Shown: positions 4,130 through 33,094, numbered from the stretch's first letter. The stretch is 64,000 bases of DNA from Neoechinorhynchus agilis (GCA_051530055.1 CM121342.1:10679480-10743479), one strand, 5' to 3'. Numbers and translations are program-made. Notes: a model not told the origin generated them from the sequence alone.

Positions 4130-6474
4130 TAATTCTTTTTTCTTAAACCCTTAATACTTTCAATTTTTTTATTAAGATTAATGTCCTTGAAGTGCCGTAA
4201 ACATGAAATTGTTATAGGTCGACTTTATGAGCGTTAAAAGAAAAAACATGCAGTAGTTTAAAATGTAATCCTACGAAGGATATCACTAAACATTATGGGT
4301 TATGTTTTTTGGGTGAAAATGTTTCAAAAATCGGACAACCTAAAAATTAAGTTTGAGGCAAATCATTTAATTTTATCATTCATTATTACTGTTGGGTGAA
4401 ACGTCTGGGTGTCCGCACAAAACAAATTTAATTTTATGCATCATTAGAATACGAGCGACGTATTTCGACTTTCTCCGTTCGTGATTTACGTTGGCTTAAA
4501 ACAAGAACTTCAATTTTCCAGAACTTTTGAAAGATTGAAAAAGGTCTCCAAAGTTGTCCATTGGTTATTGTTTTTCCGGTAACAATTTGTTTTCTTGTCC
4601 ACAGACTCAAAGAGTTATATTGTATTTTTGATAAAACCAAAAGGATGCCTTGTTACCTTGAAACATATCATCTAACCAACACGAGTTTAGGAGTAAAGAC
4701 AAATTCTCCTGAACGATTTGTTAATGGAAGCTTTTTCCGCTATTTTATCGTTAGACCACTGACGGCTGTTGGTTGGATTTTCTAATTGTCGCTATGATTT
4801 TAATTATGATTCTTTTACACGCTAAACACGAAAATCGAATTCATCTTTATTTCGATAAAAATGTCTTGTTGCCATTCTACCCACTAACTAATGATTTTGG
4901 TTCCACTGAACTTCCAAGGGTATTTTTAACTTTTGCATACACTGGTTCAATTAATTCTTTATGTTTTTTGTTTGCCACATGATTAATCATCTTTTCTAAT
5001 ATTTCAATGATTTGTGACGCTTGAACTTCTTCAGCCGTTATTTCCTTTGCCATGATTTCCTGGAACATTCGACGAATCCAGTCTAGATTCCATATACTGT
5101 AATCCTTATGAAGTCCAATACGCAATCCTCTGCAATAAAAGGACAAATCGTGATTGATTGGTTTAAGCGATTCTTGGGTCCTTTCAGTGGCCTCCGAACT
5201 TTTCTCACTGTGCGATGATCCTGCACATTTAACAAGCTTCTTTTTTCTGGGAAATGATTTCCTGGCTTCACAATTAAAGACGTATTTCCGGCGCTTTGGG
5301 GCAGCTATAACGACTTCCTTCCGATCCAATGATTCAGACATTTTCGCTGATTTGTCGTTGACGCTTTCGGCAGCGCTAGGTTCTTCGCTCATTGGAAATG
5401 TGCGCTTTCTCTTCAGCGAGGCTTTCAACTCCTCAGAACTTTTTGCTGCGTCTAATCTTGCCTCTCGGATTGTTTCGCCGAATTTGTCGGCCAATTTCTG
5501 TATGAGGTATTTATACCGAATGTTTTTTGTATTATTGTTCATCTGCAACAACATCGGAACTACTCCTGAGCGCTGGATTTCCTCCGCGGAGAATTCTCCA
5601 TAGATCATTTCTCCAAATACTCGACATACCCAATCTCCGCTGATTATTGTAAAATTTTTGTCAATGCCGAAAGAGAGTTTATAGGCAATTTCTCCAAGCA
5701 TTCCATTCTGCGTCGACGTTTCTCCTCTTAAATTATCCTTTTTGATTTTTTCTTTCATTAATATTTTATCTTTATTGTTTACCGGCTTTCTGCTGATTTC
5801 AGCCGAGCCTTTAGAAATCTTTTCATCACCACCTTTAGCCTTTGAGTCAGCCTTTATTTGCCATTCACTGATGTTTGAGGATAATTGGACTTTAACTTCA
5901 TGACCCGTATCCTGTGCCGGACGTTTGATTTCTGTATTTTCGAATGATTGTGAATTTTTTCTTTTGCGGTTCGCTACATTTTTATCTTCGGTTGAAGCTT
6001 TCGTCATATCTGGAGCTGATTGAACATTCGGAGGTCGAGTTCTCGTTTCGTCTTCTTTGCCGATATTGGTTTCTTGAGCCTTGTTCATCGATATTACTTT
6101 TATGGGAGTGATATGATCTAAGTTTGCATCATTCACGTTGCGCTTTTGAGACGGGAAATCACATTGTGTTTGTGTTTTCTCAATAGTACATATTTACTTG
6201 ATTTTCCATGTTTATTGAATTGACAAATAATAGAAATACTAATTACAAAAATAATTTAAAGCTCAAGACGCTAAAAAACAATTCGAAACGTTTGCATAGA
6301 AAAAATAGATTCTTTATCACAATGTTATCCTGTGGACTAAATAAGCTCGGGCAACGGTTGCGCCTTTGTCCACTTGAGCACCATTTAAAGCGTACCACTG
6401 TTTTCCCAATGAAAATTTAAAATTAATTCTTGCTTTATTATTGAGTCCATCGGTTAAACTGAACGAAGCGATTA
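4130..6474 (-). repeat. Copy 1 of the repeat unit carrying the double-domain ORF
   Basis: Closely matches 30920-33100, 33875-36052 and (inverted, partial) 42655-43420. Confidence 0.9.
4877..6136 (-). CDS. Unknown basic protein (419 aa from GTG; ~403 aa from ATG at 6088) with two internal ~78-aa helical repeats resembling LEDGF-IBD/TFIIS-N fold
   Basis: Longest intact ORF of a 4-copy repeat unit. aa154-218 align ungapped to aa338-402 (about 23/65 identical by manual count). NLS-like RKRK, KRKR and KRRK motifs lie in disordered segments. An AATAAA follows the stop on the minus strand. Confidence 0.7.
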   Translation of the reverse strand: MNDANLDHITPIKVISMNKAQETNIGKEDETRTRPPNVQSAPDMTKASTEDKNVANRKRKNSQSFENTEIKRPAQDTGHEVKVQLSSNISEWQIKADSKAKGGDEKISKGSAEISRKPVNNKDKILMKEKIKKDNLRGETSTQNGMLGEIAYKLSFGIDKNFTIISGDWVCRVFGEMIYGEFSAEEIQRSGVVPMLLQMNNNTKNIRYKYLIQKLADKFGETIREARLDAAKSSEELKASLKRKRTFPMSEEPSAAESVNDKSAKMSESLDRKEVVIAAPKRRKYVFNCEARKSFPRKKKLVKCAGSSHSEKSSEATERTQESLKPINHDLSFYCRGLRIGLHKDYSIWNLDWIRRMFQEIMAKEITAEEVQASQIIEILEKMINHVANKKHKELIEPVYAKVKNTLGSSVEPKSLVSG

Positions 6475-9400
6475 TATATATAACGGCGTGTACAAAATGT
6501 TTCTCGATATATCCTAATTTTTATCCGAATTTCGGTTGCAAATGTTTTAGGTAGTTGTTTTTGTTTTTCCCTCTCTCCATCAGCTTTATGATCGATCTCA
6601 AGATCCAGCCACGTGTTAGAGAGTGAAGAACTAAAACCTTTTCATATAAGGACTCCATTTTTGTCGATTGATTATGAATGTGTCGTCAGGTTTTTAATAA
6701 TAAGCTTTTTCTATCCTTCTTTTTCATGTCTTTCATCGGTTCTTTTAACCAATTTGTTTCTTCAATCTTTAGACGTGACATTCCGTGTGTGTATTCAAAG
6801 TAGTAATTTCCTTGCTCTATTTGTATTCGTGCTTTTTTCTCGCTTCAAGTTGCGACATGCTTCATATATAAAACCTCTATCTATAGCATCAAACGCTCTG
6901 CTAATATCTAATTGTACTACTGCTTTGTGCACCTTTGAGTGAGTACTGTTCAATCTATGAAGTTCTATCGATAAAGTGTTCACGCTTTTGCCCTTTATAA
7001 AACCATGAAAGATATTTGGGATCTTTTTTTTTCGATAATAAATCCATAAGGTATTATTCAAGCACCTTTCCATAATAGAAATAACTGGGTTTTGAATTGC
7101 GATTAAACGCACCTCCGTTAGAGACATTATTCTGTTCTTATTTTTTGGAATTATCATCTTCTTCACTATGTTAAATTTCATTAGTTCAAAAAAGGACATG
7201 TCCTTATCCATTTTGGTCCAAAATAAAACTTTATTTCGTTCATCTAGCATATCCATTACCTTGGGAGAGACATCTTTTCCATTCATGGCCAAAGAGGAGT
7301 TGCCCTTCCAACTTTTAAGTACCTGTTCTATATTTATATCCCCGAAGGAACATTTTTCCTTCTCAGTCCATATGTATGGGTTTTTTTGCCCCCAATATAT
7401 GGTATAATAAAATCCGTTCTATTACATTAGTGTATGAAATTTCCCCTATCCGAGAGGCTGCTTTCATTTTCCAGTCAGTTCTCCTTTTCTTTAAAATTGT
7501 GTCCCAGAATTTTTTCTTCAGAATGCCTGAAAGTGATAGATTTAATCTATCTTTTTCTATACTCTCCTAATATAAATTTTTATAAAATTTCCCCATCCAG
7601 TACTGAGAACCCAGAGAATCTCCGTTGGCTTCGCAAATTCGTGCCATGCGGTAGTTCGCTGCATTTGGTCCAAAAGCACGATTACTCCTAACTGGCCTAA
7701 CAGTAATTTGTAATTTTTTTTTGCAGCAATCGATACCATGCTATTAAATGCCCCCATAGAAACCATACCTTTATCATTTAACAGAGATGATAGGGTTTCA
7801 TTAAAAAGCTTAATGGCCACAGGACTATAAAAATCGACTTTTGTTCTCAGTCCATAGGAACCTAGAATATATATTAGCATGTCATGGCCCATTTTTTTGT
7901 TATCAAAAAATTGTCCGGTAACATTTGCCACCAAGTTTAATTCCTTCCTGGAGAACATGAGGTCTAAATAAGAGTGAGAGTTTTTCGAGTGGAAGGTGGG
8001 TGAGCTCGACATATGAACGTTATAGTTCGAAGACCAGTGATTCAGTGCCACCGCCCCATTTGAGTTAAAGTCCCCTAGTATCAAGTCCGGTTTCCATTCT
8101 AGCAACCATTTCTCTACGTTTTTTTTGAAGAAAGATATTTTTTGGGAGCTATATATAAGTTGCCTACAATGAGACTAGCCAGATTAAATCCTTCTTCCTT
8201 TAAAAAATTACTTATCGAAATTATTTGGATTGCATAGTTTACGGTTTTGGATTGCACTAATAATTTTGGACAGAGGGACTTATGAACCGTTGTTTGTAAT
8301 CCTCCCGAGAAACCCATTTTATTATTAGGGCATTACCGTTATTTATAGGTGCTAATACTACAGTAATGTAATCCAAGTTTTCAATCAGGGATTGTTGTCC
8401 TGTCTCCTGCATACAAAATTTTTTCGTAGAGTCCCAATTTATCGCCTGTTTCAAGAAATTAGATAATGTTGAAATTTTCGAAACATTATATGTTATAATA
8501 TTAAAATTATGACTTAGGTAATTTATGGGCCTTATCATATTAAATTTTGTTTGATAATGAGGTTTTCCCCCTTTTACCTCCCGTGATTCCATTTCTATTT
8601 GATATTATGCTTCCTCCTCTGCTCTTTTTTGTAATTTGCTTTTCTGGTTGCGCCACCTTTCCACTGTTACCAGATGTAATTACTATTTCCTCTATGTCTG
8701 AACTTGATTCTGATGAAACTTCACTGCCCCCTCGCCCTCCGCAGTTGGGGCAACACTGTCTATTAATGCTACTACATTGTTCCTTACCGTGGTTTTCTGA
8801 GCAAAACACACATTTGATTTCGTTATTGCACTCCCAGGTTCTGTGCCCTTTTGGCATTGGGTTAGAATGAAATCATGTATTGATGTTTTATTTTGACTTG
8901 AAAATTCTATCCAGTAAGCCAAAAACGGAAAATTGCGTCCTTTAATTTTATTAATCGTGTCTTGGGTTCCCGCAACTAAAATCGCATATGGATCCATTGT
9001 TGGATTTTTTCTTAAATATTTAATTGGGTCAACGCCAAACACTTTTTTTATCTCCTGGAACTCTTCCTTACTGAGGTCTGGAGGTGGATTAAGCATAGGA
9101 ATAGTAGATCCCCGAGATATATCGTCAAATGTAATTTTCTTTTCCTCAAAAATTCCTTTAAAACTTTTTAAGCCATCCATTCCGAAGAAAAAAATCAAAA
9201 CTACCCATTTGGTGTTCACCACATTTTTAATTTGGAATACCAGCTGTTTCGTAAGCTTACTAGGTTCTAAGAACTTTTTATAAGATTCCTTTATTAGACA
9301 GTTTATCGTTAAATTTCCCAATCCTCTTTTAGTCTAGGCAATCTCTGGAATGCTGTTCCCATCCTCAAGTTACCCAAATCATGGTGGGGCCGAAAAACCA

Positions 9401-9811
9401 TTATTATTGAGACCCACTGTTTCATATTCACCCCTTTGCCGACTGTAGACTTGGTGGGGGTCCGCAAAAACGTTATCCGTCATAACCACCTCATCTTCTT
9501 TATTTTCTGAGCAGTTTTCCTTCAGATTCCTTCTTTGGTGGTGGGCCAGAAAAACACTATCATTAATAACCACCTTTTTCTCCGGGTAACGTGGATATCG
9601 CACACACTCATAACTAACCTAAGCAGGATCTTCATCCACTTCCATTCCTCTTTCTATAGAAGGTTCCTTCGCATTATCATAATCAACCTCCATCTGACCC
9701 CCTCCTCGGTCATCCGGAGGATCGGGGTCCCATAAATCTCGATCATTCGAACTTTGTGTCAGAGCGCAGTTTTTTTAACAAAGAATTGCGCGACATGTGA
9801 TTATTGTACCC
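6475..9811 (-). mobile_element. AT-rich LINE, family A, internally deleted
   Basis: ORF1 8692-9321 plus CCHC knuckles 8540-8857. APE 7557-8317 (LGDFNS, YLDLMF). RT N-half 6795-7292 (HGFIKGKS, QLDISRAFD); no QG/YADD half is seen. Probable ~9-bp TSD aagcgatta (6466-6474) / aggcgatta (9813-9821). (TA)n tail. Confidence 0.85.
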
Positions 9812-9827
9812 AAGGCGATTAAGTAAA

Positions 9828-12800
9828 GACACACACAAACTGTGAATCATTTAGAACGAAAAAAAACCGTGCGCTATTTTTTGTTTAATTTTGCGCTCTG
9901 ATAAAATCAAAGAAACAGCCTAGTAAGCAGCCGATATCTTCTAGTATATTGGAAGATATGGCCACTACACTTTCCGGTTCAAGTTTTCCTCTGGTTTCGG
10001 ACGTAGTTATTTCCCACACGTGTGATTGTCAGGTTAGGATTTATTGTGCCCCAGTTTCTAACATTATTAAACGTCCAACCAAGAAGGATGATTTTGCTGT
10101 GAAGATCTCAAAGGAAGCTTTGGGTACCAGATCACCTGCTGAGCTTACACGAACCTATTTTTCACGTTATTTGGTCATTGGCGGCAAAGCGTCTCTTAGG
10201 CATTTCAACATCAAGAGGTTATTCGCTGCCAAGTTTCATATTATCTTCTGCTTTTTCAATGCGGAAGGGAGGGACTTATTTTTCAAAATGTTGACGGGCT
10301 TGGATATTACGTTTGTTTATCTTTCAAGAAGGGTGACCATTAGAATGTTTAATGCGCCTCAAGAACTGGATGCAGAAGGTTTTCGATTGGTAGAGAAGGA
10401 ATTAGGTGTGAAACCGATAAAATACCTATTCAGTCCAAATTCGGTTTCAGCATATTCACTTCTTTGTTCTGCCCCGGTGGAGACTGCAGACATATTGGCT
10501 TCCTCAGGTCGTGCTATCATGTCACACTGGGTGACCTTCTCCAGGTATCAGGAGTCAATTTACGACTTCAACCTGACTATATGCCAAAAATGCTCTGTAT
10601 GGGGACATACGGAATCAGGCTGCAAGTCTTCGCCGAGATGCATCTTTTGCGCTGGCTCCCACCATAAAAGGGACCGTAAGGCACAGGATAATCCTCTCTG
10701 CGCGAATTGTGGAAAGAGACACCCAGCCTTTGCTAGGAAGTGCAAGTCTCACACAATCCTTCATGGATACAGAGAATAGTAAGGGATGGGCTACTTACAA
10801 TCCTCATCCAGTTCACAGTGCTGACAACACTAAACAATCTGTTCGTAAGAAAGTGCAGCCTTGTATCTTGGAGGACATTTCACCCTTCCCTACTGACTCT
10901 ATTACTATATCCCACTCATCATCCCAAATGAGTTTAAACTTTGAAAACGAATTCTCTTAAAATCCATGCTTGCGTGGATTGTTGAGGGACTGACAAATCC
11001 GGATTTTGCTTCTCTTGCAAATGGACTATCCTTACAAGAAAATACCTCATTTAATAAAATTAGGGAAATGATTAATTTCTCTTCTACGAAAAGACAAATC
11101 TCACCATACTCTAGAGAATTGGACGAATCAAATCCAAAACGTAACAGATCTTAATATAACGGCAGAGCCTCTATGGACCCCTGACTCAAATTTTTCTTTT
11201 ATAACACATAATGCCTCTAGAGCATATAAACTTCCCACTCACCTTTCTGACTGTATAAACTCTTCTTATACGGATCTTCTCTTTTTTTCCAGAAACTGGT
11301 CCATTATCCAAACTATAAGTGCTTTCTCTTATCTCCACGTTTTACTAATCCCTCATCTAGTATAGGATTTTCCGGCGGACTTCAACTTTTTATCCTGGAT
11401 TAGTATGCCCCGAGCTGCTCTTTCAGGAGAAGAACGAGATCTTTGCGATCCAGATCGTGTCTATTAAAAACGCTCTATACGGCTCCTTCTCACCCTCTAA
11501 TCTCCATTTAACGATATGCAATCTCTATATTCAACCCAAGAAAGTTAACTCTTTTACCAAAATGTATATTAACTTCTTATTATTTTGAGATCCCGACTTT
11601 TTAGTTGGGGACTTCAATACTAATTTTTTCTCAGGCCTCAGACCGTTCTTTAAATCTCAAGACTTTTTATTACCTAAATTTCCATCTTTTCATAACTTTA
11701 GTTCAAACAGGCACTCCTTTTTGGATGGTGCAATTCTTAAAAAGAACTTTCCGTTACTCTTTTATCCCTCTCATTAATTACAGGTCCAGTATCTCCTGGG
11801 ACATGGTTTTATTTTATTTCAATCCAACGGACTCTCACTTAGAGATTTTATTATTTTAAATGACATATCCATACGAAATTTTAATAATGAACTTAGTTCC
11901 TTGTTCTCTAAAAGGAACTTGATTTCTTTTAGCATCTTTAACGACCTCATTTTACTTTCTGTAAAGAAACATCTTATCACTCAATCTTACATTAAGCGTC
12001 CTCCTGTATGTAGGACTGCAAATATTTTTTATAAAAAAGCAATCATTGCTAATCTTTTTAATAACAAAACTCTTCATGATTTCCTCATGAAGAAATTTTA
12101 CACTGAAAAATTCTTCTTTCAGATTGAACAGGAGACGAAAACCCTAGTGAATCTCAAACTTTTTGGCAAAGGTTTTTTGTCGACCATTTTAAACAAAAAA
12201 CCATCTTGTTGGAGAGCAAAGGCTGCCAATTGGATTGATTCAATTTCTTATCCCAAGGTGATTGAGGAAATTTTAAATGCGCATACATTCTCGGCTAACG
12301 CAGCCCCTCCTCTTCCCATTTTTAATAAAAAATTATTCTCTTGGAACTTAGAAATTAATTTTCTATTGGAATCGTGTAGATATCACGGTTCCGTGTCTAA
12401 TAATTCAATGAGCTGCTCCCCGAAAATCTTCGCTGCTATTAGCGAAGAGATTAAATGTTTATTCTTTTCAAAATTAAAATTTACAAAACTAGATTTTGAT
12501 GATCTTCTTCATATTAATATAGTGAAGAAAGTCTTTTTACCGAAAACCAAGGGTATTATTTCAAAACCGGCTCATATTAGAGTAATTTTAATTCAGAATC
12601 CTATAATCTCCTGCGTAGAAAGAGTTGTAAATTGACTTTTATACACGTTTTGGGAAACTAAGAAGCTTATTCCTTCTTACTTCCATGGTTTTATCAAAGG
12701 TAAAGGCGTTAACACCTTACTTGATTCCCTTAACTGTATGAACAATATTAAATTTGTTCAAAAAATTCTTATTCAGCTTGACCTGAACAAAGCATTTGAT

Positions 12801-13971
12801 GCTTTGGATAGAACCTTTTTATACAAAGCTCTTGAGGAGCTAAAAATTCCTCTGAATCTTATAAAAAAATCAATTACTTACTTGAATCAAAGTCCTTTTA
12901 TTATGAGGTGGATCCCTCAAAAACCAAATTCTTTTCCCGCTTGGGGGTCCCCCAAGGCTCTTTACTATCCCCTATTCTCTTCCTTATCTGCCTTATTTTT
13001 ATCTTTAAGAAATTGAAACTACCCAGGGGTATCTTTCCTCTTATATATGCAGACGATATCTTTCTCTTCTGCAAGGCCAGGTCTTGTCCCTCTCTTTTAT
13101 GCAACATTCAAGCAGCTCTGAGTACCCTTAGCTCAGAGTTGAAATTGGCTAATCTAGCCACCAATACGAATAAAACCTTTTTTATCCCCCTCACTAACTC
13201 GCTCTCTTCTTGGAAAGTTTTAATCAATAATTTAATTAAACACCACAATTTTAACTCCTCCAACATTAAGAAATTTACCAGGGTTCTAGGAATCGACTTC
13301 CCCTCCAAGACATTTAGATTTTAATTAATTCTTCGATTAATAATACCTTTCTAAAAATCAAATATGTTCTTAATAGAGCCAGATATCTTGATTTGAATTT
13401 TAACATTATATTAACCGTTCTAAAAACTCTCATTGGAGGATCCATCTGTTTTTTCGGGAGAGGTCGCCCTCCTGAACTTAGGTTTGCCTTCTTTTTTAGA
13501 TGTTTTAATAAGCTTCATAAACTTTTATCAAATTATAATCTTATCCATGAGCCTCTTTTATCTTTCCTCTCACGCTTATTTTTGGGAAAAATCTTATTCT
13601 TCCCTTCATTTTCTAATAAAGGTAAGTTCTTTATATCTAATGAACAGGTATTCTACTTTCCCTCTCCTTCTAAGCCTAACTTCAGCGCACAATGCTCCAA
13701 CACAATTCGATTGGAATTCAATGATGCACACACTTTTTTTACAATAAGTAATTTCTTAATGGATAAAGATAGGAAATGGTTAATGGCAAGAAAGTAATAC
13801 TACCAGGATAAAAGATTAATCTGGTCTTTTGGACCTCCGAGGTGGTCTGAGATCGACCTAATACCTGAGGTTCAACAGAGCAGACGAAGGACCAACGATA
13901 ACTTCTAGACTAACGAAAAATCCTAGTTGTTATCTTACTAGTTGTATGGCCGTGTTAAATAAATAAATAAA
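9828..13971 (+). mobile_element. AT-rich LINE, family B, full length (4.14 kb) with frameshifts
   Basis: ORF1 9949-10779 has three CCHC-type knuckles (CQKCSVWGH...CIFCAGSH...CANCGKRH). Decayed APE ~11160-11900. RT 11901-13797 (LDLNKAFD, GVPQGSLLSP, YADDI). (AAAT)n tail. TSD attaagtaaa 9818-9827 / atcaagtaaa 13972-13981. Confidence 0.9.
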
Positions 13972-14005
13972 ATCAAGTAAATGCAGTTGAATACTTATCA
14001 CACAT

Positions 14006-16056
14006 CGCGAACAAGCGTTCGTTCATGCGCTCTAATATAGTTGGGAACAAAAATTGCGCTAAAGCGAAACCAAAGGAAAAGGTACCACCAGATCCTCCGG
14101 ATATTCGAGGGAGAATTATGATAAAGAACAACAACAAGGTTGATTTGTCTGCAAGTGAGAAGGGAGTTCTCGCCGGTAGGCTTCGGTTAAAGCCCGTGGC
14201 ACATCCCCGTTTAAAGCATTACATCGTGAACCCACTAGTCTTGATTTTTTGGTTCCATCCTCAGACTCTTCTCCCCCGCCCAACTGGGTGAGCAATTCTC
14301 CATCTTTCTTAAGAGAATCTCTCAGCCCTCAGAAGCTGGGTCACATTTCTCATGACGATTTGGTTCCTGGTCTTATCAAAGAAATTAACCAACTAAAAGA
14401 ACTAGTGAGCTCTGTTATCCAAATTATTAAAATAAATTTCCTGGCCATCCGAAATAAAAATGACAATTCGGTTTATACAATTAACGCAGCAATTAAAAGG
14501 TCACACTTCCCTCCTCTCAAGGAAACTGATTTAATAAGCAAGCGAGGGAGATCCTCATCGTTCTCCGAGTAAATGACTAGATCCCTGGATTCACCTTCTC
14601 AATCTATAATGCTTCTAGAGGTTCATACCACCCTTCTAAAATTTTTCAAATTGTATCAGATACTTTGGCAGATATATTATTTTTTCAAGAGTCGGGATTT
14701 CGTACTCTTGTTAATCTACAAATATATTAAGTTGTCGTGCTGAATCCCATGTCATCCTAGGGAAACTTGTTAATGGGCTTCTCCGGTGGTTTACAAATTT
14801 TTGTTAAAAAGTCCCTAAAACCTAAAATGCTATTTCAACTCAAGAATGATATATTTGCAATACAAAAAATTGCTATTAGGAACCCACTTTCCTCTATTAA
14901 TCCATCAACAGGCGAAATACTCACCATAGCAAATTTTTATGTCGTGCCTCGGAAAGCGAGCTGCTTTATAAAGAATTACATAAATATAATTACCTTATGG
15001 GACCCTGACATCATTTGTGGTGATTTTAACAGCAATGGCCTTTGTGCCTTTATTTCCTTTTTCAGGGAATATCGAGTGCTCCTCTCTGAGTATGCATCCT
15101 TTCATAATTATACTAAGAACCATCATTCCTTTTCGGAGGGAGCTTTTATCACAACATCGATTGGGTCTAATTCTTGTCCTATCATCCAAGCTCAATCTCA
15201 ACAATATTTAGGACATGATTTTATTCGACGTTGATCGAATTAAATCTAGAAGTCGTCTTGAGGCCAATACTCGATCCATTGAAGAATTTAATTCCCAAAT
15301 ATACTCGCTCTTATCATCTAACAACACTATTACTTTAACAAACTTAAATAATATAATTACTACCGCTATGAATACTCATCTCACTAAATATCGTTTTATT
15401 AAGACAAACTTTATGCGCTCCAGCAGCTTCCTGCTGCAGCGAATCAGCGCGGCGATCCAACACGGCAATGCCGCGGCCATCAAGGAAGCTGCCGAACAAT
15501 CATAACGTATGAGTGTGTAATGAATAATAATAATCTAAATAAGCAAATTTTTTTGATAAATATTCTATACTTGCCAATTTGAGAAATGATGTGACCCTCC
15601 AGAAGGATGCTATTTCCAAATTCTTTTCTACAGTGCATTATGATTCCCTCGCTCGGGATAAAAAGCGACTTTTATCAGTGTCAGCGTTCACTAAAGAATT
15701 TTGGAATAAAATTCTTAAACGGATATTTATTTCTTGGAAATATTTGGCTGTAAATTGGATTGGGACAATTTCTTACCCAGCAGTAGTCGAACAAATTCTT
15801 AATGCTCACACATTCTCCACTTTCCTGCACCCACCTTTGTCTACCTTCACTGATAAACATTTTAGTTGGTACTTCACTACTGCCGAGCTTTAAAAATTCT
15901 GGAAAATTAATCCCTCTAGGGCAAATAACTTTTCTTGTTTCTCCCTCTTAAGTTTTTCATTAGTCTCCGAAGGGAATAAGATCTGTTTCTCTGAAAATTT
16001 TTACGACAAAATCAATATAAATGACTTAATCGAGATGAATATTGTCAGGAAAATTA
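14006..16056 (+). mobile_element. AT-rich LINE, family C, 5' half with deleted ORF1 and no RT core
   Basis: APE motifs IANFYVVP and ICGDFNS (14767-15234). The linker is homologous to family B (AVNWIGTISYP vs AANWIDSISYP). It breaks off at 16056 into the PLE remnant through ttaac microhomology. Confidence 0.8.
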
Positions 16057-16248
16057 ACTGAACGAGGCGATTAAGTAAATGCAGTTGAATGCTTATCACA
16101 CATTCGAAACATCAAAATCAATTTAATTTCCACAGTTCATAATGTGATTGGCTATTGTTGAGGAAGCATCGTAACGCCTAAATGCTTTTTTCTGTGTTGT
16201 GCGATCCCTTTCTTTAGTCTTGGTTTGATTTCTACCACAAATTTAGCT
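16055..16248 (-). mobile_element. Penelope-like GIY-YIG 3' remnant (target region)
   Basis: Same sequence as 33085-33280, whose minus strand reads as a degenerate GIY-YIG segment. Confidence 0.6.
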
Positions 16249-16249
16249 G

Positions 16250-19200
16250 GGCGCCTTTATTTTAGCAAATCGTCCATAACGTAACTGTCACAAAGCATCT
16301 ATTTTGAAATAACGGTCAGAGTGCATAACGATGAGACTCGAGTTTTCTACATAAAGCCCTTTCTCGGTTTGTGTTCACACAAAAAAATCGTTTTTTCGAT
16401 AGAAAATTAACGAATTTGACGGTTATTTGAATTGATGAATTTGCGCATCAAGGAAAATGGTTATACGCGCAAATTTAGAATTTCGCTTCGCGCGTGATAA
16501 AACTATTGATACGAGATGCTTCGAGCCGCCTGATGGCGGTGATGTGGATTACTTAGAGATGATGGATGTCAATAAGGAGAAGGGTTGTTTGCGTGAGAGT
16601 GGGGCAGGCAAAAGAATGCCTGCCGATGTTGCTGTATATAATGTTAAGGGTAATGAGATCGCCCAAAGGGTTTCTATCCTTGGAGAGGACAGTTTGTTTC
16701 CAGTTACTGATGAAGTTATGAAAAATAAGGTTTCTCTCAAAAAATGGTACTATTTTCCGAAAAATGTCAAACTCATTTCGTTAAATATCTGTCTGAAAAA
16801 AGATCCCTTAAATGGATTTCTCTAAGAAATGCAATGTTCTCATTCAGAATAGTCCCCCAGAAATGGACTAAGAAGCAAAAAAATATATGGGTGATAAGTT
16901 AGGAATAAGTTTTCTGAAGTATCTGTTAAAATCGAATTCCCAATTACCTTATGGAATGTTATGTCAAATTGATATAGACAACGCTACCAGACGGGCCGAT
17001 ATTTTTAAGAATATCGTGGCTAAATCAAAGTCGGTCTACCCTCTATGCTCCAGTCGGAGGACTCCAATATCCCTCAACAGTCGACATCTTCAAACGATCT
17101 AATTTCTCCAAATCGATCTGCAGCCTCTTCGCAAATTAAATTTTTCCTCAAATCGAGAAAGTCAGGACTTCCAATTTCTAAAATCATGGTGAAAGGCGAT
17201 AAACACGTACGGGAACACACTTTGCGAGCAATCCTCTTATGCTTTCAACTGCTTCGAATCACTTTTCTCGCTTAAATCAGGATCGGTTCAAGACGACCAC
17301 ATTTTTCCTCAATGCAATTTTTGTCGAACATGGGGCCACTTTGCTCAACATTGTCCTGACCCTGCTTCTCCAAGATGCAGCAATTGCGCAAAAACTGACC
17401 ATGCATCGGACAATTGTCCCAACAGAGACAATAAGCGATGCACGAATTGCAATTTACCACGCCCCGCTTTCTACAGAGGATGCCCAGAATTCAAAACGTA
17501 TTGGCTATGGACTATTAGTAAAGATCATAATGTTACACCTCGATACCGCTCCTTGTATCCTCCAACAACAACTTCAATGCACTCGGCACCTCTCACCTTC
17601 TGCCACTTCGTGCCCCAATGTTCGGACTTCATCAACTCAATTTTTGCACGTCGATCAATTTGAGCGGCGTCTGGATGAAGTTTGTAACAGGCTTTTCACC
17701 ATGATACAAGCCCGACTCACAGAAGCGATCACTACACTCAAAAGGAAGATCAGCCCTCTCCTCAATAATTTGGACAATCTTCCGAATTTACTTTCCTCAT
17801 GCATTCCACTTGCGGATAACTGTGCACGTAAAAGGGTTGGTAATTCGGACTTGGATACTCAAAGTTTCAAAAACAAGCCATAACACCCAATCTGTTCCCA
17901 TCTGAAAATCCTGATTCCCTTATGGACGTCGAGGTATCAGACGCTAAATTCGTCACTAACATCATCGCGAATCAATCCTCGATTATCAAAAATTGCACTG
18001 CATCCCTCACATCCAATGGAGCTGCCAGAATTCTATGATGACTCAATGGCTCAGGTAACTGTGATGGATCTGAGGGTGCTACAATGGAACTGCGGTGGGG
18101 CGACAAATTTAGCCAGACTAGCTTGTTTTATATCAGGTGTTTCGATTTTCTTCATACAAGAAACCAAAAGCATTTTTAATTCAGATCAACTATATACTAA
18201 TTTCCCCCAATTCCACTCTCCCTTTTTCACTTTTTTATCACTACTCCAGTACCTCATGCTTCTCAGGTACCTTTATCGGGTTTCCAATCAACCCTAAACC
18301 CCAAGTTAATTTCGTCATTTTCCTCAATTGACATGCCACTTTTTTATAATTTCCTTCAATGAAAAAATTATCTCTCGTAAATCTTTACATCAGACCAAAC
18401 TTCATTCACAAACCTTCCATTAAAAATAAAGTGAAGTGGATCCTCAAAGCCAACATAGATTTTATCGTTGTGGATCTCAACGATCCATCTTTAAAATGGA
18501 CAATCTGCCATTAATTCCGTGAAGTCTTCCCATAATCTAGCCATACACACCTCGCCCTCCTTTCACAATCTCACCACTAACGTCCATTCTTTTTTAGACC
18601 TTCGATTCAAGTAGATTGACAAATTTCTTCTTTTGACTTCCTTGGTCATGATATTTTATTTTGGTCTCTTGGTCCTAGCAATGTTTTACGTAAAGTCTAT
18701 CACAATTCTCCACTCAATGTTGCCTTTTTCGGTTTTGTTAGTCGGAATCTCCTTGGTTTCTTTTTTACTAAAAATAACCGTCGTCATACTCTTCCTTATG
18801 TCAACAACGCCCTTAATTCAGTTGCTGAGACGAATCACTGGCGATTCGACTAAAGGAGCATTCCTTCTACGCTGCATCCGTCCTTTCGACCGTTACACCA
18901 GGACGGCAGCTGAGTGATCCAGAGCGGTGGTGTGAATGATCTTATTGTTTAAAATAAAGATCGCAATTGAAAACTTTAAAATTCCATTTTATTTTATACT
19001 GTAAGATCCTTCTCTCGTCCATACGAAAGCCGTTCTCTTCGCTTTCTTGGGCGGCAACTTTTCTTAGTCAATCGTTCCCCCTCCTGGTTAAATTTGTTAT
19101 CGAATCATTATTGGGGTGCCTGGTGCCGAATTCATCAACAAAAGGACGCGGACCTTCTTGCTGACCTACAAACTTTCACATCAAAATGGTGGAACACTTC

Positions 19201-19891
19201 CCAGAGGAAAAAACTGACACCTTGGAAATCCAAGTTATCTTCTTGGATGAAATCGTCGCCCTTAGAGAACATTCTTAGCTCCGTGTTTGGTTTTCACTCC
19301 ATAAGATGCACCAATAAAAGGCCGAATATTACCTTTCGTTGAATTCCACTTAATCGTGTGGATCTGAATCCAAATGACATTGTTGAAGCTTGATTCACCA
19401 AACCGAAATTAGCATCTTCAAACTCTCATTCATGCACTAAAATTCTTGCACTTCTTCCCCGCGACTGCATCGCGAAATTAGCTAATCTAATGCTTATTTG
19501 CTCTCCTTTCGGCTAGCGAGATATCAACACTTCTCGTCGTATATTTCTTGTCAAAAACGGAAAGAAATTGGTAACTCAGACAAGCGACCTTCGCCCGATT
19601 TCCATTCAAAACCCGTCTGTTACTATCTACGAACGAGCATTGGCTATACGTTTAAATATCTTCCAAAATGAACACAGGTTTATCTCGCACCGTTGTCACG
19701 GCTTTCACAAGGGTAAATCTGTACATTCCGTTGTGGCTGATATTTATTCGAATTTCTCTAACTCCACACGACTGATTCGGACTATCATTACTGTCGATAT
19801 GTCCCAAGCTTTCGACAGGATCTTCCTCTCTTTCATTACCCAAATCTTGGAATTTTTTCAATGTGCCGCACAATTTTATCTCTCGAATCTA
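16250..19891 (+). mobile_element. AT-rich LINE, family D (mosaic, 3' truncated)
   Basis: A frame overlapping ORF 17239-17883 encodes CNFCRTWGHFAQHC...CSNCAKTDH...CTNCNLPRPAFYRGC. APE starts LQWNCGG...IQETK (~18060). RT 19568-19880 (DLRPISIQNP, CHGFHKGKS, VDMSQAFD). Confidence 0.8.
18815..18960 (+). mobile_element. Short CRE-like 3'-end fragment inserted in family D
   Basis: gagacgaatcactggcgat...ttacaccaggacggcagctgagtgatccaga is shared with the CRE 3' end at ~60885-60985. Confidence 0.7.
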
Positions 19892-20468
19892 CAACATCTT
19901 ATTCACGAAATCTTTTTATCATGAAGATGACCCAAGCGTCCGTGGCGTTTGGCAACGTTTATGGGTCAAAAGAATCCGTCCAAACATGCCATGGGAAAAA
20001 ATCCCAAGAGACGCTTAGCAGACACGAGATCATGCCGCTCCAGCGCCTCACCCAAGTACCGGCTATTCCGATTCTCGCCTTTCAACATCTTATTCACGAA
20101 ATCTTTTTATCATGAAGATGACCCAAGCGTCCGTGGCGTTTGGCGACGTTTATGGGTCCGAGAATCCGTCCAAACATGCCATGGGAAAAAATCCCAAGAG
20201 ACGCTTAGCAGACACGAGATCATGCCGCTCCAGCGCCTCACCCAAGTACCGGCTATTCCGATTCTCGCCTTTCAACATCTTATTCACGAAATCTTTTTAT
20301 CATGAAGATGACCCAAGCGTCCGTGGCGTTTGGCGACGTTTATGGGTCAAAAGAATCCGTCCAAACATGCCATGGGAAAAAATCCCAAGAGACGCTTAGC
20401 AGACACGAGATCATGCCGCTCCAGCGCCTCACCCAAGTACCGGCTATTCCGATTCTCGCCTTTCAACA
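19892..20468. repeat. Three tandem ~191-bp units
   Basis: Units start at 19892, 20083 and 20273, are bounded by caaca microhomology, and differ at only a few positions. Confidence 0.95.
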
Positions 20469-22920
20469 CATATAGCGATCTTTCGGAATGCGGTAAAATC
20501 GCGTTGAAGTCACCGGCTATTAGGAGGGTGTCTCTGTTCGGTACATCATATAATGCTTAGGCTAGATTTCCATAAAATCCTTCAACCGCCTCTTCATCCG
20601 ACGAGGAGGTCGGTAAATACACGCCAAAAGCATAGAGATTTCTCGACCGAAGCTTTATGCTGACACGAAGGATTCGGTCAGCTATAATATTGCGGGTCAA
20701 AAACGCTGAAACATTCACAGTTGATGGGCTGCCAACCGACCACAAGTTGGTGATGTGTCAGTTGAGCATGAGTGACTCGTTGTTCCGTACGCCTCAACAT
20801 CCTCCACGTCCGTTCTATGGCGCCCTCGCTAATGAGGAGAAGAGGAAAGAGTTCGATATCGAACTAGAGAATCAACTGAGCTAGATGCCAGCTGCTGAAA
20901 CGGATATTGATTTTTATTACAAGTCAATCTGCGACGCAGTGACCGAAGCGGCCGAGAAAACCCTCCCAAAAATGAGGCATATAAAAGCTGCAAAGGTTAT
21001 ATGGCAGGAGGACTGTGAATTTATGGCAATGGCTGAGCAGATCAAAACTCTAAGAAAAAGAGGAAAACGATCTGAGGCTCGCATTGCAAGTCTTGAACTT
21101 GCCAACCTCTGTAATGAAAAGCAAAAAGCATCGATAGAGGATGCAGTTCGTGGGATCGCATATAAGGAAGGTTTTGTTCGTACCTCCTTAGCATGGGGAG
21201 CGATAAACACTCTCACAGGAAGATCCCAAAGACAGCCAACTTTGGTTGAAGGTCCCTCCCCGGAAATCAGAAAAAAGAGAATCGCAAATTATTTTGCGGA
21301 AATTCTCAATTCGCCATTATCGTCTTTGGAAGTGAATCCTGTACTTCCAAAAGGCACAATCATCCCAAGCCCTGGGAAGCGATCGCTGCGGCGAAAATGA
21401 TGCGTGCGGGACGTGCATCAGGCCCAGATGGGATAATGGCAGAGGTACTGAGGTTTGAATCTATTGCCAGAAAAATCATACCGATAATGAATGGCATAAT
21501 GAATGGTGGTTCAGTACCTCAAATCTGGCAAACGGCGCATTTAACAATGATCCCCAAGAAATGCTGCTCGACAAAGGTGGAGGACTACAGAGGTATATCC
21601 TTGATGTCCAACACGGCAAAACTTTTCAGCAGCATTTTGAGGCGCCGAATTCAGCCAATCCTCGAACCGTTTCTAAGAATTGAACAGAACGGCTTCAGGA
21701 AAGATCGATGCACTACGGAGCACATATTGGCTTTGAGTAGGATCCTCGAGGAGGAAGGAATTCATCAAACGGATGTGACGCTGGTATTTGTTGATTTCCG
21801 TCGAGCTTTCGATTCGGTAAATCGAACAATGATTGGCGGTATCTTAAAGGAGTATGGAGTGCCGCCGATCATTGTCACATCCTGTATGGCATTATATAAA
21901 AAAACAAGGTCCGCCGTAAAGACAGCTGACGGTTTGACAGAACACTTTTCCACCACTTCAGGTGTTCTGCAGGGCGACACATTGGCTCCTTTCCTCTTCA
22001 TCTTGGTGCTTGATTGGGTAATGAGATGGGCACTACCGAATGATGAAGATGGATTTCTTCTGTTGAGGAAAAGAGGTCGCAGGTATCCTGAGATACGCGC
22101 CTCCTACATGGCATATGCCGACGACATCGTATTGATGTCCTCAACAGTCGAAGGAGCTCAACGCATGCTAAATAGACTGTGCGAGAGGGCGAGTATGATT
22201 GGTCTGACCATCAACTTGAAAAGGACGGAATTCTTGACGATTCCGCATGTCGCGCATACAATCTCTGGCGAAGGGCCGAATGGCGTTGAGCAATTAAAAC
22301 AGATAGAGCGGTATGTCTATCTGGGAGCTGTCGTTCCTGAGGTGAGTGCGGATGTCAGCCGACGGAGAGCTATAGCTTGGAGAGCAATGGGACAACTTAA
22401 GCCACTGTTTGACAGTGAGTCTTTGCCAAATGAACTGCGTTCGCAGCTGTTCAGGGCTCGAATTGAGAGCATTCTCTACTACAATGCAGAGACCTGGACA
22501 ATGTCGCCAACGGCGACGAGGCAGTTGGACCAAAATCATTCATCTCTCTTACGTGCGGCGTTCAAGGCCAGATGGTCAGATAAAGTGACCAACAAAGCAC
22601 TGTATAAGAGAGCCGGAGTCCAACCGCCCAGTGAATATTTGCGCCGCAGACGACTGCAGTTCACGGGCAATATAATTCGGTCCGAGGCATCTTGCCCACA
22701 GGTCGTGCAACAGTTCCTTTTCTGGAAGCCAACGACATTGTATCGTAAAGGCCAAGGGAACTGTCGTACATACGATGACCTGATTTTAAGAGACGCGAAT
22801 TGCCCGCATAACAGGACTGCTGTCGTGTATTTTAGACCCCTTGCGGAGTCTAATTCTATTTGACGGGCTTATACCTACGGTGCAACGTAGGAAAGTACCG
22901 TTGCATACAATACAATACAA
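19892..22920 (+). mobile_element. RTE-clade LINE with inverted 5' segment
   Basis: Plus strand: APE end (TDHKLV), then RT ORF 21397-22863 (SGPDGI, YRGISL, FVDFRRAFD, GVLQGDTLAP, YADDI) and a (TACAA)3 tail. Minus strand 19892-20690: mid-APE (DRILRVSI, GVYLPTS, IAGDFNA). Confidence 0.9.
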
Positions 22921-28330: not shown

Positions 28331-28629
28331 TAGGTAAGTATCATTTCCTTACCACACATTCCATTCTGGTTAAAGGTTGAGGTTTGACAGCAGCTGCTCT
28401 CTTGCCTTTGAGGATATCGGAATCCTCATCGAGAAGTTGGTTGAACGAGTGTCTCCACCCCTGTTCCTCCATGGTCATCAGGAGGATCAGGTTCTCTCGA
28501 AATCGTAGTTGTTGTTGGCACGCATTTTTCATTGTTACGAAAATTGCGCATTTTTGACAAAACCACTAGGTGCAATATCGATTACCACTTCTGTAACGCA
28601 ATGTAGATTTATCGCTACAAGGACCCAAA

Positions 28630-29090
28630 AAACGCTTTCCCTGCCAAGCATTCTAGAACCCACTAATCTTTGCAGATTAGATTGGCGTGGCTGTCTTCCT
28701 TGGCGGGAGGGAAAATGGTTGTTGTGGGATGCAACTTGTGTGGACACGTTGGCAAACTCCAACATCAGCCACTCGAAAAAAGGTTCAGGAGGAGCGACGA
28801 CGGCGGCAGAGGAGCGGAAATGCTCGAAATACAGGGAGCTAATCCGAAACTACCATTTTGTCCTCTTCGGTGTGGAAACGTATGGGGCCTTGGGAGGGTC
28901 GGCACTGGCCCTTGTGAAGGACTTGGGGGAACGAATCAACGCGGCGACTGGAGAGCCAAGATCGACTTCGTTCCTAGCCCAAAAAATAAGCATTGCGGTG
29001 CAGTGGGGCAATGCGGCCAGCATTTTGGCCAGCGCCGATGAATAGGAGCGGAGAGGTTGTAAACAATGCACAGATTGCGTATAAAAATTA
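28630..29090 (+). mobile_element. CRE-like RLE C-terminal fragment
   Basis: LPWREGKWLLWDATCVDT...FGVETYGALG...ISIAVQWGNAASI, the RLE tail of CRE-like elements. Confidence 0.85.
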
Positions 29091-29094
29091 AATG

Positions 29095-30169
29095 TCTTTT
29101 TTTAAAAATAAATAATCTTATGGAAACTAAATCTGTTTATTATGACATAGAACCTGGCCGTACTCGTTTTTTCTCTAAATACGGTGTACCACAGGGATCT
29201 CCATTGTCCCCTACTCTGTTTCTAATTGTAATTATATATTTTTAAGAATATTGTGGCTAAATCAAAATCGGTGTACCCTCTGATTTACGCAGATGACATT
29301 TTTTATCTTTTGTAAACGTAAAAGTAGGACTTTCCTCTTAAATCATATAGATTCCTTTTTAATAAGGTTACAGAACAGCCTCAAGGAAGGTAATTTAGTC
29401 GTTAATCCATCGAAAACAGTTATCCTACCACAAGATCTGGCTTCGCATTCAACATTTTCAGCTTTTTTATTCAAGAGACACAACCGAATACTTGGCATAG
29501 ATGAAATATCAAATAGGCAACGTTTTTGATTAATTCCTCGCTCTCTGGAATATTTTATAAAGCAAGAAATCTCTTGAATCGTATGCTTCGCATTGGGCTC
29601 ACTTTTAATTATATTTATAGAATTTCAATTACGCTTTTAGGAGGTTCATTATGTTTCTTTGCAATGGGGCGTCCTCCTGAATTTCGATTGGCCTTTTTCA
29701 ATCAGTTTATTAAAAAAACTGAGTCTCCTCCCGACCTCACATCGTATTGTTTACTAAAATCTGGTATTATTCTCCTCATTTTCCAGCCAATAAATTTTTA
29801 TTTTTTAAGAATGAAATTTATTTAGTCTCTTTAAAAGCGAAGGCACTAAATATCAAACCTGATCATATTCTGATAAAACTTAATCTCACCAAGAAGCTTG
29901 ACTTTTATATTTTATTCACTAATTTAATTCAAAAGGACAAACTGGAAATTATTGTGTAATTGAGTCTTTATTTTAGACCAGTAAACAGGTCAGTTTTTTC
30001 TATGGAGGGAAAGGAGGAGTCCGGGGAGTACTGAGATCTACTCTAACTCGAGACTTCCTTTCTCGTCTTACTACTAACATATACATTGAGATTTGGATAA
30101 TGTATGCAAATTCACAGATTCTTTAAAAAAGACATTGAATATATGCGCAACAAATAAATAAATATAAAA
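29095..30169 (+). mobile_element. AT-rich LINE, family F, 5'-truncated
   Basis: GVPQGSPLSP and IYADDI motifs. The C-terminus is homologous to family B (GGSLCFFAMGRPP). An A-rich tail abuts tcacacat at 30170. Confidence 0.85.
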
Positions 30170-31506
30170 TCACACATTTGTGTCATCAAATTCAATTTGC
30201 TTTCCACAGTTCCTAACATGATTGGCTATTGCCAGGGAAGCATCGTAACGCCTAAATGATTTTTGTGTTGTGCGATCCCTTTCTTTAGTCTTGGTTTGAT
30301 TTCTACCACAAATTTAGCTGAGCAGTCTTTGCAGTGGGCAGCGTATGTAACTTCATGCTTTTCACATTTTGACTTATTTTTAAGGATGCCTGCAAGGTTT
30401 TACCACCGTTTTGTAGTACACAAAATTATCGTCTTGTCGCAGGGAAGGCAAATCTCATTTAAGATCCGATGGGAACAAGTGAACGCCCGATAGTATTGCA
30501 GATTCCGAAGTGTAGGATTCAAAGTAAACGCCTGTTGATAAGGGTCTTAAACTTGGCTTGAAGGTCAAATGTTTTTTTCGGGTGAATATCTCGGAGTATT
30601 TCGATAATTTGTTTATTCCGACGAACCGTCCTCCAGTTCCTTAGGGGACTCTCTTATACTACAATTGATTGGCACAGAGCATAAAGGGGCTTTAGGGTGC
30701 ACGCATTGAACGCGAAATGCTGATTTAGCGAATGAATGTAAACGGGATTTCGTCGAGGGTCGTCGTAAACACACGTATCAAATCTCCAAGTTTCGCCACT
30801 ATCATGGGTTTCGCTGATCGAGGGATACGCCGGATTAAGCGAACGTTCCGTCCTATGAGGTTCCTTAGTGCAGTCAAATCTTAATTGACCGGAATGATTG
30901 TGGGTATAATATTTTCCGGGCAGCAGTAGTTTAAAATGTAATCCTACGAAGGATATCGCTGGATATTATGGGTTATGTTTTTTCGGTGAAAATGTTTCAA
31001 AAATCGGACAACCTAAAAATTAAGTTTGGGGCAAATAATTTAATTTTATGCATCATTAGAATACGAGCGACGTATTTCGACTTTCTCCGTCCGTGATTTA
31101 CGTTGGCTTAAAACAAGAACTTCAATTTTCCAGAACTTTTGAATGATTGAAAAAGGTCTCCAAAGTTGTCCATTGGTTATTGTTTTTCCGGTAGGACAAT
31201 TTGTTTTCTTGTCCTCAAAATTTTGGGAGCTAAGACTTAAAGAGTTATATTGTATTTTTGATAAAACCAAGAGGATGCCTTTTTACCTTGAAACATATCA
31301 TCTAACCAACACGAGTTTAGGAGTAACGACAAATTCTCCTGAACGATTTGTTAATGGAAGCTTTTTCCGCTATTTTATCGTTAGACCACTGACGGCTATT
31401 GGTTGGATTTTCTAATTGTCGCTATGATTTTAATTATGATTCTTTTACACGCTAAACACGAAAATCGAATTCATCTTTATTTCGATAAGAATGTCTTGTT
31501 GCCATT

Positions 31507-32718
31507 CTACCCACTAACTAAAGATTTTGGTTCCACTGAACTTCCAAGAGTATTTTTAACTTTTACATACACTGGTTCAATTAATTCTTTATGTTTTTTG
31601 TTTGCCACATGATTAATCATCTTTTCTAATATTTCAATGATTTGTGACGCTTGAACGTCTTCAGCTGTTATATCCTTTGCCATGATTTCCTGGAACATTC
31701 GACGAATCCAGTCTAGATTTCATATCCTGTAATCCTTATGAAGTCCAATACGCAATCCTCTGCAATAAAATGACAAATCATGATTAATTGGTTTAAGCGA
31801 TTCTTGGGTCCTTTCAATGGCCTCGGAACTTTTCTCACTGTGCGATGATCCTGCAGATTTAACAAGATTCTTTTTTCTGGGAAATAATTTCCTGGCTTTA
31901 CAATTAAAAACGTATTTCCGGCGCTTTGGGGCAGCTATAACGACTTCTTTCTGATCCAATGATTCAGACATTTTCGCTGATTTGTCGTCGACGCTTTGGG
32001 CAGCGCTAGGTTCTTCGCTCATTGGAAATGTGCGCTTTCTCTTCAGCGAGGCTTTTAACTCCTCAGAACTCTTTGCTGCGGCTAATCTTGCCTCTCGGAT
32101 TGTTTCGCCGAATTTGTCGGCCAATTTCTGCATGAGGTATTTATACCGAATGTTTTTTGTATTATTATTCATCTGCAACAACATCGGAACTACTCCTGAG
32201 CACTGGATCTCCTGCGCAGAGAATTCTCCATAGATCATTTCTCCAAATACTCGGCATACCCAATCTCCGCTGATTATTGTAAAATTTTTGTCAATGCCGA
32301 AAGAGAGTTTATAGGCAATTTCTCCAAGCATTCCATTTTGCGTCGTCGTTTCTCCTCTTAAATTATCCTTTTTGGTTTTTTCTTTCATCAATATTTTATC
32401 TTTATTGTTTACCGGCTTTCTGCTAATTTCAGCCGAGCCTTTAGAAATCTTTTCATCACCACCTTTAGCCTTGGAGTCAGCCCTTGTTTGCCATTCACTG
32501 ATGTTTGAGGATAATTGGACTTTAACTTCATGACCCGTATCCTGTGCCGGACGTTTGATTTCTGTATTTTCGAATGATTCTGAATTTTTTCTTTTGCGGT
32601 TCGCTACATTTTTATCTTCGGTTGAGGCTTTCGTCATATCTGAAGCTGATTGAAAATTCGCAGGTCGAGTTCTCGTTTCGTCTTCTTTGCCGATATTTGT
32701 TTCTTGAGCCTTGTTCAT
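31507..32718 (-). pseudogene. Copy 2 of double-domain ORF, one frameshift near 31720
   Basis: ORFs 31720-32718 and 31507-31698 together reproduce the 4877-6088 protein. Confidence 0.85.
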
Positions 32719-33094
32719 CGATATTACTTTTATAGGAGTGATATGATCTCAGTTTGCATCATTCACGTTGCGCTTTTGAGACGGGAAATAACATTGTGTT
32801 TGTGTTTTCTCAATAGTACATATTTACTTGATTTTCCATGTTTATTGAAGTGACAAATAATAGAAAAACTAATTACAAAAATAATTTAAAGCTCAAGACG
32901 GTAAAAAACAATTCCAAATGTTTGCATAGAAAAAATAGATTCTTTATCGCAGTGTTATCCTGTGGACTAAATAAGTTCGGGCAACGGTTGCGCCTTTGTC
33001 CACTTGAACCCATGGAAAGCGCTGCATTGTTTTTCCCAACGGAAATTTAAAACTAATTATGGCTTTATTATTCGGTCCATCGGTTTAACTGAAC

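Follow-up and report, generated by a model that had tools for sequence, protein, structure and literature searches.

Clustered LINE junctions in a putative Penelope-like remnant of the acanthocephalan Neoechinorhynchus agilis

The long interspersed nuclear element (LINE) Tx1L, of the Tx1 clade, inserts in the DNA transposon Tx1D of Xenopus, and its specificity was established from many copies at one site. In 28S ribosomal DNA (rDNA), distinct LINE lineages (R1, R2, R4, R9 and NeSL-type LINs), with either an apurinic/apyrimidinic endonuclease (APE) or a restriction-like endonuclease, insert close together (PMC4640811, PMC5035012). Known target-specific LINEs use fixed bases and occur in many copies, and specific clades include non-specific families (PMC4640811, PMC5035012). 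Penelope-like elements (PLEs) display a partial-tandem organisation (pseudo-long terminal repeat, pLTR) and 5'-truncated copies are typical (PMC8557442). Here, a stretch of 64,000 bp (the window) from chromosome CM121342.1 of Neoechinorhynchus agilis (Acanthocephala; assembly GCA_051530055.1) was considered, in which several LINEs adjoin one short segment of a putative PLE remnant. Window position w corresponds to record position w + 10,679,479. The 3' (priming) junctions of five LINEs, designated A, B, C, F and K, all fell within 44 bp of this hot segment, and the cluster at this single locus was real but not overwhelming. The chances appear about even that it represents a local hotspot of preferred nicking in neutral, dead DNA and not a dedicated homing site.

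A first-pass annotation of the window had pointed to an empty target site, and an uninterrupted copy was indeed present at 33083-33280, while short pieces of it separated the inserts. Positions on this copy serve below as target coordinates. Nucleotides 6413-6474 corresponded to 33043-33104 and were followed by LINE A; 9811-9827 corresponded to 33094-33110 and were followed by LINE B. LINE A displayed an 11-bp target site duplication (TSD), caaggcgatta, which was perfect in the paralogous locus L002 (CM121342.1 11091232-11113154, 380 kb from the window) and carried two mismatches in the window. LINE B displayed a 10-bp TSD, attaagtaaa. The two duplications overlapped by four bases and the insertions were 6 bp apart on the uninterrupted copy. 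The annotation had described an antisense A with a TSD of ~aggcgatta and a B with at(t/c)aagtaaa some 7 bp away, a description that needed little adjustment. Both elements kept their simple-repeat tails, (TA)n for A and (TAAA)n for B, and insertion of the two into this PLE-like segment is proven. LINE A was internally deleted after motif B of the reverse transcriptase (RT), motif C and all that follows being lost, with its (TA)n end and TSD retained. Its Pfam hits were weak (RVT_1, E=1.4e-6, just below the Pfam cut-off; Exo_endo_phos_2, E=0.006, below the cut-off).

LINEs C and F adjoined the same segment from opposite sides. Nucleotides 13975-14009 corresponded to 33104-33139 minus one base and led directly into LINE C, whose start followed ...tcacacat(-)cgcg at 33139. 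The end of LINE F, ...aaataaataaatataaaa, adjoined tcacacat at 30169/30170, with its tail against 33126; both placements agreed with the annotation, which had C starting after, and F ending at, tcacacat. C was collinear with B 11409-12533 (32-43 % amino acid identity) and F with B 12866-13494 (34-62 %). C displayed only a 5' junction and F only a simple-repeat tail on one flank. The possibility that C and F were halves of one LINE with a 14-bp TSD was discarded: the L002 copy of F reached 5' through RT motif 1, spanned RT motifs 1-2 of C without DNA similarity, and did not align to C. C was 3'-truncated inside the RT, and the break at 16053 was joined to 33083 via TTAAC microhomology, so that this right junction is a breakpoint and not a LINE end. 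This structure could have arisen by an insertion that was primed internally, lost its 3' part and duplicated 57 bp, or by a later microhomology-mediated deletion.

A further junction, missed in the annotation, was located where the right end of a tandem array of the target (36052, equivalent to 33103) abutted the 3' end of the antisense LINE K. It was found in three paralogs, the third copy residing in the 5 kb left of the window (locus L003). The K protein was 57-62 % identical to the C-terminus of the open reading frame (ORF) 37603-38937, whose RT matched only R2 proteins in the PDB (E=1.5e-4), and K is probably an R2-like LINE. Its C-terminus gave no Pfam and no PDB hits, and an AlphaFold model of it was unusable (predicted local distance difference test, pLDDT, 33). 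An earlier candidate, 'G', had been read as the 5' end of a sense LINE at 36053; the coding sense proved to lie on the minus strand (CCHC and nuclease-like C-terminus), which makes this boundary the 3' end of an antisense R2-like LINE. An insertion of K with an 852-bp target deletion, suggested by L002, was likewise abandoned. The window and the second L002 repeat identified 622-1387 as an older neighbour, so the K join in L002 is a secondary deletion.

The same R2-like C-terminus (CCHC ... EP ... RPDG ... WDATCxD ... AEERKxxKY ... FGVETxGALG) occurred in at least five copies and was not recognised by Pfam or PDB sequence searches. K-like R2-type LINEs were also found at unit position 32865 in L002, beside LINE F and beside another LINE, M.

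The significance of the cluster was evaluated on the 2957-bp unit that carries the remnant. Segments derived from this unit were mapped in ~91 kb, paralogous junctions were merged into 17 classes, and a scan-statistic simulation placed junctions uniformly on a 2957-bp circle. Six of the 17 classes fell within 57 bp (p = 1.2e-4), and five of 16, represented by the five LINE ends, within 46 bp (p = 1e-3). The most conservative scheme, with C and F taken as one site and the breakpoint dropped, placed four of 15 within 46 bp (p = 0.017). The insertion hotspot announced in the annotation was thus recovered under each way of counting (p = 1.2e-4 to 0.017). An ordinary nest of transposable elements (TEs), in which a few insertions lie close by luck and were multiplied by segmental duplication, seems quite improbable: counted separately, the five LINE 3' junctions gave p ~1e-3 to 1e-4, and the nicks of A, K and B lay within 5 bp. 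It gains from the value of only 0.017 obtained when C and F are merged and the breakpoint at 33083 is left out, from the choice of the region by the earlier reader after inspection, and from every junction being a single ancestral event copied into two or three paralogs.

Nick positions were deduced from the 3' junctions (Table 1) and would fall on both strands. The hot segment contained two TTAA sites and one TTAT site, and four of the five nicks would be at the two TTAA sites. Primer ends matched the (TA)n and (AAAT)n tails in register over 2 nt. GAT(T)AAG, present at two sites, was considered as a common nick motif and rejected, the shared part being only T^AAG, which is too frequent to inform. 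No hairpin was predicted in the hot segment (DNA fold z = -0.35); a palindrome with perfect 8-bp arms, ATCAAATT-T-AATTTGAT, was located just outside it at 33142-33158. Structure-directed targeting, as the annotation had suggested, was dismissed on the same fold value, with only this small palindrome beside the segment.

Table 1. Features of the hot segment, its flanking LINEs and the surrounding repeats (window coordinates unless stated)
Feature	Position	Strand	Remarks
Hot segment ttaactgaacaaggcgattaagtaaatgcagttgaacgcttatcacacattcgcg in uninterrupted ('empty') copy	33083-33139		every PLE fragment aligns here
Putative degenerate Penelope-like remnant	33040-33879	-	motifs read by eye from translation
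Two tandem 2957-bp units	30169-33125 and 33126-36052		self-blast, 95.8 % identity
Partial unit 'X' (= 30923-33104)	4250-6474		ends in hot segment; self-comparison
O-sequence ORF copies	4880-6193, 31720-32718, 34460-35191 (window); 10001-11923, 14874-16085 (L002)	- (window copies)	
LINE A	6475-9810	-	antisense; carries an APE domain with RT motifs 1 to B; 3' (TA)n terminus at 6475
LINE B	9828-13974	+	~4.1 kb; (TAAA)n tail; RVT_1 E=2.3e-14
LINE C	14010-16053	+	limited to 5' part (APE through RT motif 2); 5' junction at 33139
PLE fragment P4 (= 33083-33277)	16054-16249		seen in window only
LINE D	16250-19930	+	CCHC ORF1, APE, RT up to motif A; RVT_1 E=2.7e-10
LINE F	29096-30168	+	3' part, RT motif B to (AAAT)n tail; tail abuts 33126
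Putative R2-like LINE K, 3' part	36053-36951	-	CCHC and RPD-x15-D nuclease-like C-terminus, by eye
R2-like LINE copies, conserved C-terminus	28509-29045, 36281-37035, 38690-38914, 60111-60876; L002 ~5073-6419	+, -, +, + (window)	
Deduced nick, K	33103/04	plus	after ...GATT
Deduced nick, A	33104/05	plus	after ...GATTA
Deduced nick, B	33100/01	minus	after ...CTTAAT
Deduced nick, F	33125/26	minus	after ...GTGAT
Deduced nick or join, C	33082/83	minus	at ...GTTAA

The segment could also have been prone to nicks or double-strand breaks, capturing LINE cDNAs, partly without endonuclease, and serving as a rearrangement breakpoint. Such fragility would account for the truncation of C inside the RT and its microhomology join at 33083, for K, F and D being flanked by PLE sequence on one side only, and for a tandem array with both ends in the segment; the perfect palindrome next to it would also be in keeping. 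Still, this seems unlikely, since A and B displayed clean 10-11-bp TSDs and intact tails, typical of endonuclease-dependent insertion, the segment had no significant fold, and the many later rearrangements of the region can account for the one-sided junctions.

Paralogous copies bear on the independence of these events. In L002, a contiguous block F / unit / K / unit / A / B / fragment / C displayed the same junction bases at 91-96 % identity; junctions common to paralogs at this distance must be old, each having arisen once and then been copied. The composite block was a higher-order repeat whose cyclic order differed between the window and L002. Locus-specific deletions were present as well (in L002, A lacked 6491-9387 and B lacked 10823-12805), and the two features together point to repeated unequal exchange among units. 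The annotation had specified that tracing the cluster to one ancestral event, later duplicated, would undo its proposal. Each junction was single and copied into two or three paralogs, to which extent that clause applied; the ancestral locus nevertheless kept at least four to five independent events, the ancestral block holding A, B, C, F and K separately.

The same recurrence bears on the quality of the assembly. The published genome is a Flye assembly of error-prone long reads, with gene prediction run on repeat-masked DNA (PMC12690905). Chimeric joins made in assembling such reads across repeats are nonetheless very improbable as the source of the pattern: the junctions of A, B, C (5'), F and K recurred in paralogs that were 4-9 % different and hence distinct real loci, which validates them against misassembly. 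An artefact of this kind would best suit the C/P4 (16053/16054) and P4/D (16249/16250) junctions, each seen once and in the window only.

LINE D stood apart from this cluster. The annotation had it start after aatttagctg in the next copy of the target; the start at 16250 held, and the flanking sequence 16054-16249 is a separate, more diverged piece (P4, 196 bp, 89 % identical to the tandem copies versus 95 % for the rest of the copy). The junction of D with this fragment fell at 33277-33280, 140 bp from the other LINE junctions. Only the 5' junction of D was seen, and its true 5' end was at ~16255-16257, behind a filler of 5-7 nt. A copy of D in L002 displayed the same 5' start beside a different, non-PLE flank, and D is therefore not PLE-specific. 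As both D- and K-type elements were found at other sites, neither was specific for the hot segment.

Two repeats were observed in connection with D. A 191-bp unit, present three times at 98 % identity (19892-20468), ran from the D RT (...ILFTKSFYHEDD) into part of the endonuclease of a GC-rich LINE, in antisense; it covered the join of the two elements, so that the junction itself was tandemly amplified. A 46-bp stretch (93 % identity) was common to the otherwise unrelated LINEs D (16999-17044) and F (29236-29281) and to a site at 42602-42646.

The LINEs formed two groups according to their proteins. A, B, C and F belonged to one APE-LINE subclade, with 37-49 % identity among themselves, and D, M and a further family, E, to a second (38-41 %); identity between the groups was 26-34 %. 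The endonuclease regions of C, B and A aligned mutually (E=8e-30 and 6e-18), and distant database relatives carried PF14529 and PF00078. At the DNA level, blastn between families returned only chance-sized matches of 40-72 bp, in line with the families having been called non-alignable. Their description as APE-type LINEs was equally sound, A, B, C and D displaying an APE endonuclease upstream of the RT in one orientation and F being collinear with the RT of B. D and the K-like elements, each present in at least two independent copies, did not insert at one fixed nucleotide in one orientation. A, B, C and F were represented by one copy each: no second full copy of any of them was seen in ~90 kb of TE-rich sequence, where their other traces were limited to short fragments at 1438-1677 and 43599-43853. 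Protein searches, made in collections that rest on repeat-masked annotation, yielded only paralogs of the unit's own ORF or distant hits; no additional copy of A, B, C or F was retrieved, nor an intact PLE.

Taken together, the data may be explained as follows. A dead Penelope-like remnant, in a TE-dense and repeatedly duplicated region beside a FOXP gene, would have been struck at least five times by non-LTR retrotransposons via target-primed reverse transcription (TPRT), with priming ends within 44 bp. The segment may have offered LINE endonucleases generally an accessible place, favoured locally, for nicking and priming, in DNA where insertion costs nothing, and the whole composite would later have been copied by segmental duplication. 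Nicks on both strands, at several positions and by enzymes of two superfamilies, would point to such a favoured spot rather than to a homing endonuclease. In particular, nicks on both strands at five positions would be unlike the work of a family-specific homing endonuclease.

Several observations sit uneasily with a generally favoured spot. The four core APE LINEs (A, B, C and F) all came from one subclade, which hints at a shared specificity. The left flank of C (to 33139) and the right flank of F (from 33126) overlapped by 14 bp (33126-33139) in different elements, which looks like one site reused. The unit contained 24 TTAA sites of which only the two in the hot segment were used, so an A/T-rich nick site fails to explain the focus. 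Moreover, K, F, C and D displayed PLE sequence on one side only, and their insertion into the PLE is probable without being TSD-proven.

The first two of these observations lend some weight to a dedicated specificity, in which the A/B/C/F subclade would recognise a stretch of ~45 bp in the PLE endonuclease gene as a safe haven, comparable to R1 and R2 in 28S rDNA. Four members of one subclade sat at 33094-33139, the surveyed ~90 kb yielded no other full copy of them, and the different elements C and F had a TSD-like overlap of 14 bp. Some APE clades are target-specific, and a single target gene may be shared by several specific lineages (PMC4640811, PMC5035012). We consider this reading rather doubtful all the same: A, B, C and F were each seen once, their orientation and nick position varied, the unrelated R2-like K used the same dinucleotide as A, D-type and K-type elements were demonstrably non-specific, and F may simply lie inside the tail of a C-type element that was inserted before it. 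With one subclade supplying the four APE elements and C and F reusing a 14-bp site, dedicated targeting stays a minority view; recognition of the ~45-bp stretch as a transposon-in-transposon niche, perhaps by the R2-like LINE too, is judged unlikely. The annotation's safe haven for APE LINEs in a PLE 3' end therefore stood in part: the hotspot, the non-alignable families and the TSDs of A and B held, whereas the PLE identity was not confirmed, a role of structure found no support, and the nick pattern and the presence of the probably R2-like K on the same bases did not agree with it.

The identity of the target was examined on its minus-strand translation. Read by eye, the remnant displayed a zinc-finger-like CxxC, a GIY-YIG-like core (VTY-AAH-CKDC-SAK-FVVEIKPRLKKGIAQHKxH) followed by AIANHVRSCGNQIKFDD, and downstream of the core a block AIANH..H.IKFD; the hot segment corresponded to the C-terminal end of this GIY-YIG-like domain. 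PLE endonucleases carry a pair of cysteines within their GIY-YIG core (CCHH zinc-finger-like) and conserved R, H, E and N residues beyond it (PMC8557442). The motifs of 33040-33879, as read, would fit this description. Pfam found no RVT and no other hit in the minus-strand translation, so that a PLE-type RT was not seen, and the stitched translation gave no hit in profile searches with Pfam and the PDB. An exhaustive phmmer search with 30657-30965 (minus strand) returned only spurious BNR/Asp-box proteins. This stretch translates to SETHDSGETW, which resembles the bacterial BNR/Asp-box repeat SxDxGxTW and hence explains the sialidase-like hits. The 'PLE GIY-YIG' label of the annotation, unconfirmed by any profile or exhaustive search, is thus a putative assignment from motif reading by eye.

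The remainder of the unit was of another nature. The unit consisted of the ~840-bp PLE-like stretch and a 2.1-kb sequence, 'O', whose boundary (30922/30923) was seen three times. O encoded a minus-strand ORF of 330-440 amino acids in the tandem units (330-490 with the partial unit and the L002 copies counted), without Pfam family, whose only relatives were four hypothetical proteins of N. agilis (ACOME3_007244, ACOME3_007127). It may be either a gene family or a transposon protein.

Globally, the window was a transposon graveyard, with RT and endonuclease fragments throughout on both strands. Scans with Rfam and Tandem Repeats Finder (TRF) uncovered a single notable tandem repeat, and Rfam detected no structured RNA over the window, hammerhead ribozymes included. 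N. agilis transposon proteins were nearly absent from protein collections because repeats were masked before gene prediction. Two uninterrupted RT ORFs on the plus strand, both from GC-rich elements, were found at 21397-22863 (488 amino acids; RVT_1, E=5.5e-26) and 37660-38940 (426 amino acids; RVT_1, E=2.6e-18). Neither was recorded as an annotated gene, and their families may have been recently active. A FOXP-type gene (FOXP coiled-coil and Forkhead domains; L003 18101-19252) was located immediately to the left of the window. A portion of this gene, 2.3 kb long and with the coiled-coil exon (ORF 49066-49662), was duplicated ~52 kb rightward (window 47876-50149) at 96-98 % identity.

If true recognition were involved, the locus would represent a new case in which LINEs with endonucleases of two superfamilies have converged on a single short target within another retroelement. 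A 57-bp oligonucleotide would then offer a tractable substrate for asking how LINEs choose their targets, in a phylum that has hardly been studied. On present evidence, the locus is a well-documented hotspot of local insertion within a TE graveyard. It also calls for caution, as paralogous copies inflate the apparent number of events and one-sided junctions do not prove insertion.

Compared with PLEs of pLTR organisation, the PLE-like remnant was also present in head-to-tail units; the 2957-bp unit differed in being mostly an unrelated 2.1-kb sequence with its own ORF, and no hammerhead was found in the window. L1 insertions that are 3'-truncated, microhomology-joined or endonuclease-independent are known, the last usually without duplication. 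LINE C likewise lacked its 3' half and was joined at a 5-nt microhomology, but its flanks overlapped by 57 bp of target, and a later microhomology-mediated deletion fits equally well. With Tx1L and Tx1D the locus would share a LINE target inside another transposon, as in the idea of a safe haven in a TE, while A, B, C and F were single copies. As in the 28S rDNA niche, APE and probably R2-type LINEs crowded one repeated sequence; there, elements occur at a fixed nucleotide and orientation in hundreds of copies, whereas here families were seen once and two were shown elsewhere. The arrangement also resembled TE nests, in which one TPRT insertion after another (short TSDs, simple-repeat tails) breaks up elements that are old and dead, and segmental duplication then copies the whole. 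With five priming junctions in 44 bp and three nicks in 5 bp, it was much tighter than the ordinary nesting of this repeat unit, in which ~11 other junction classes were spread over ~2900 bp.

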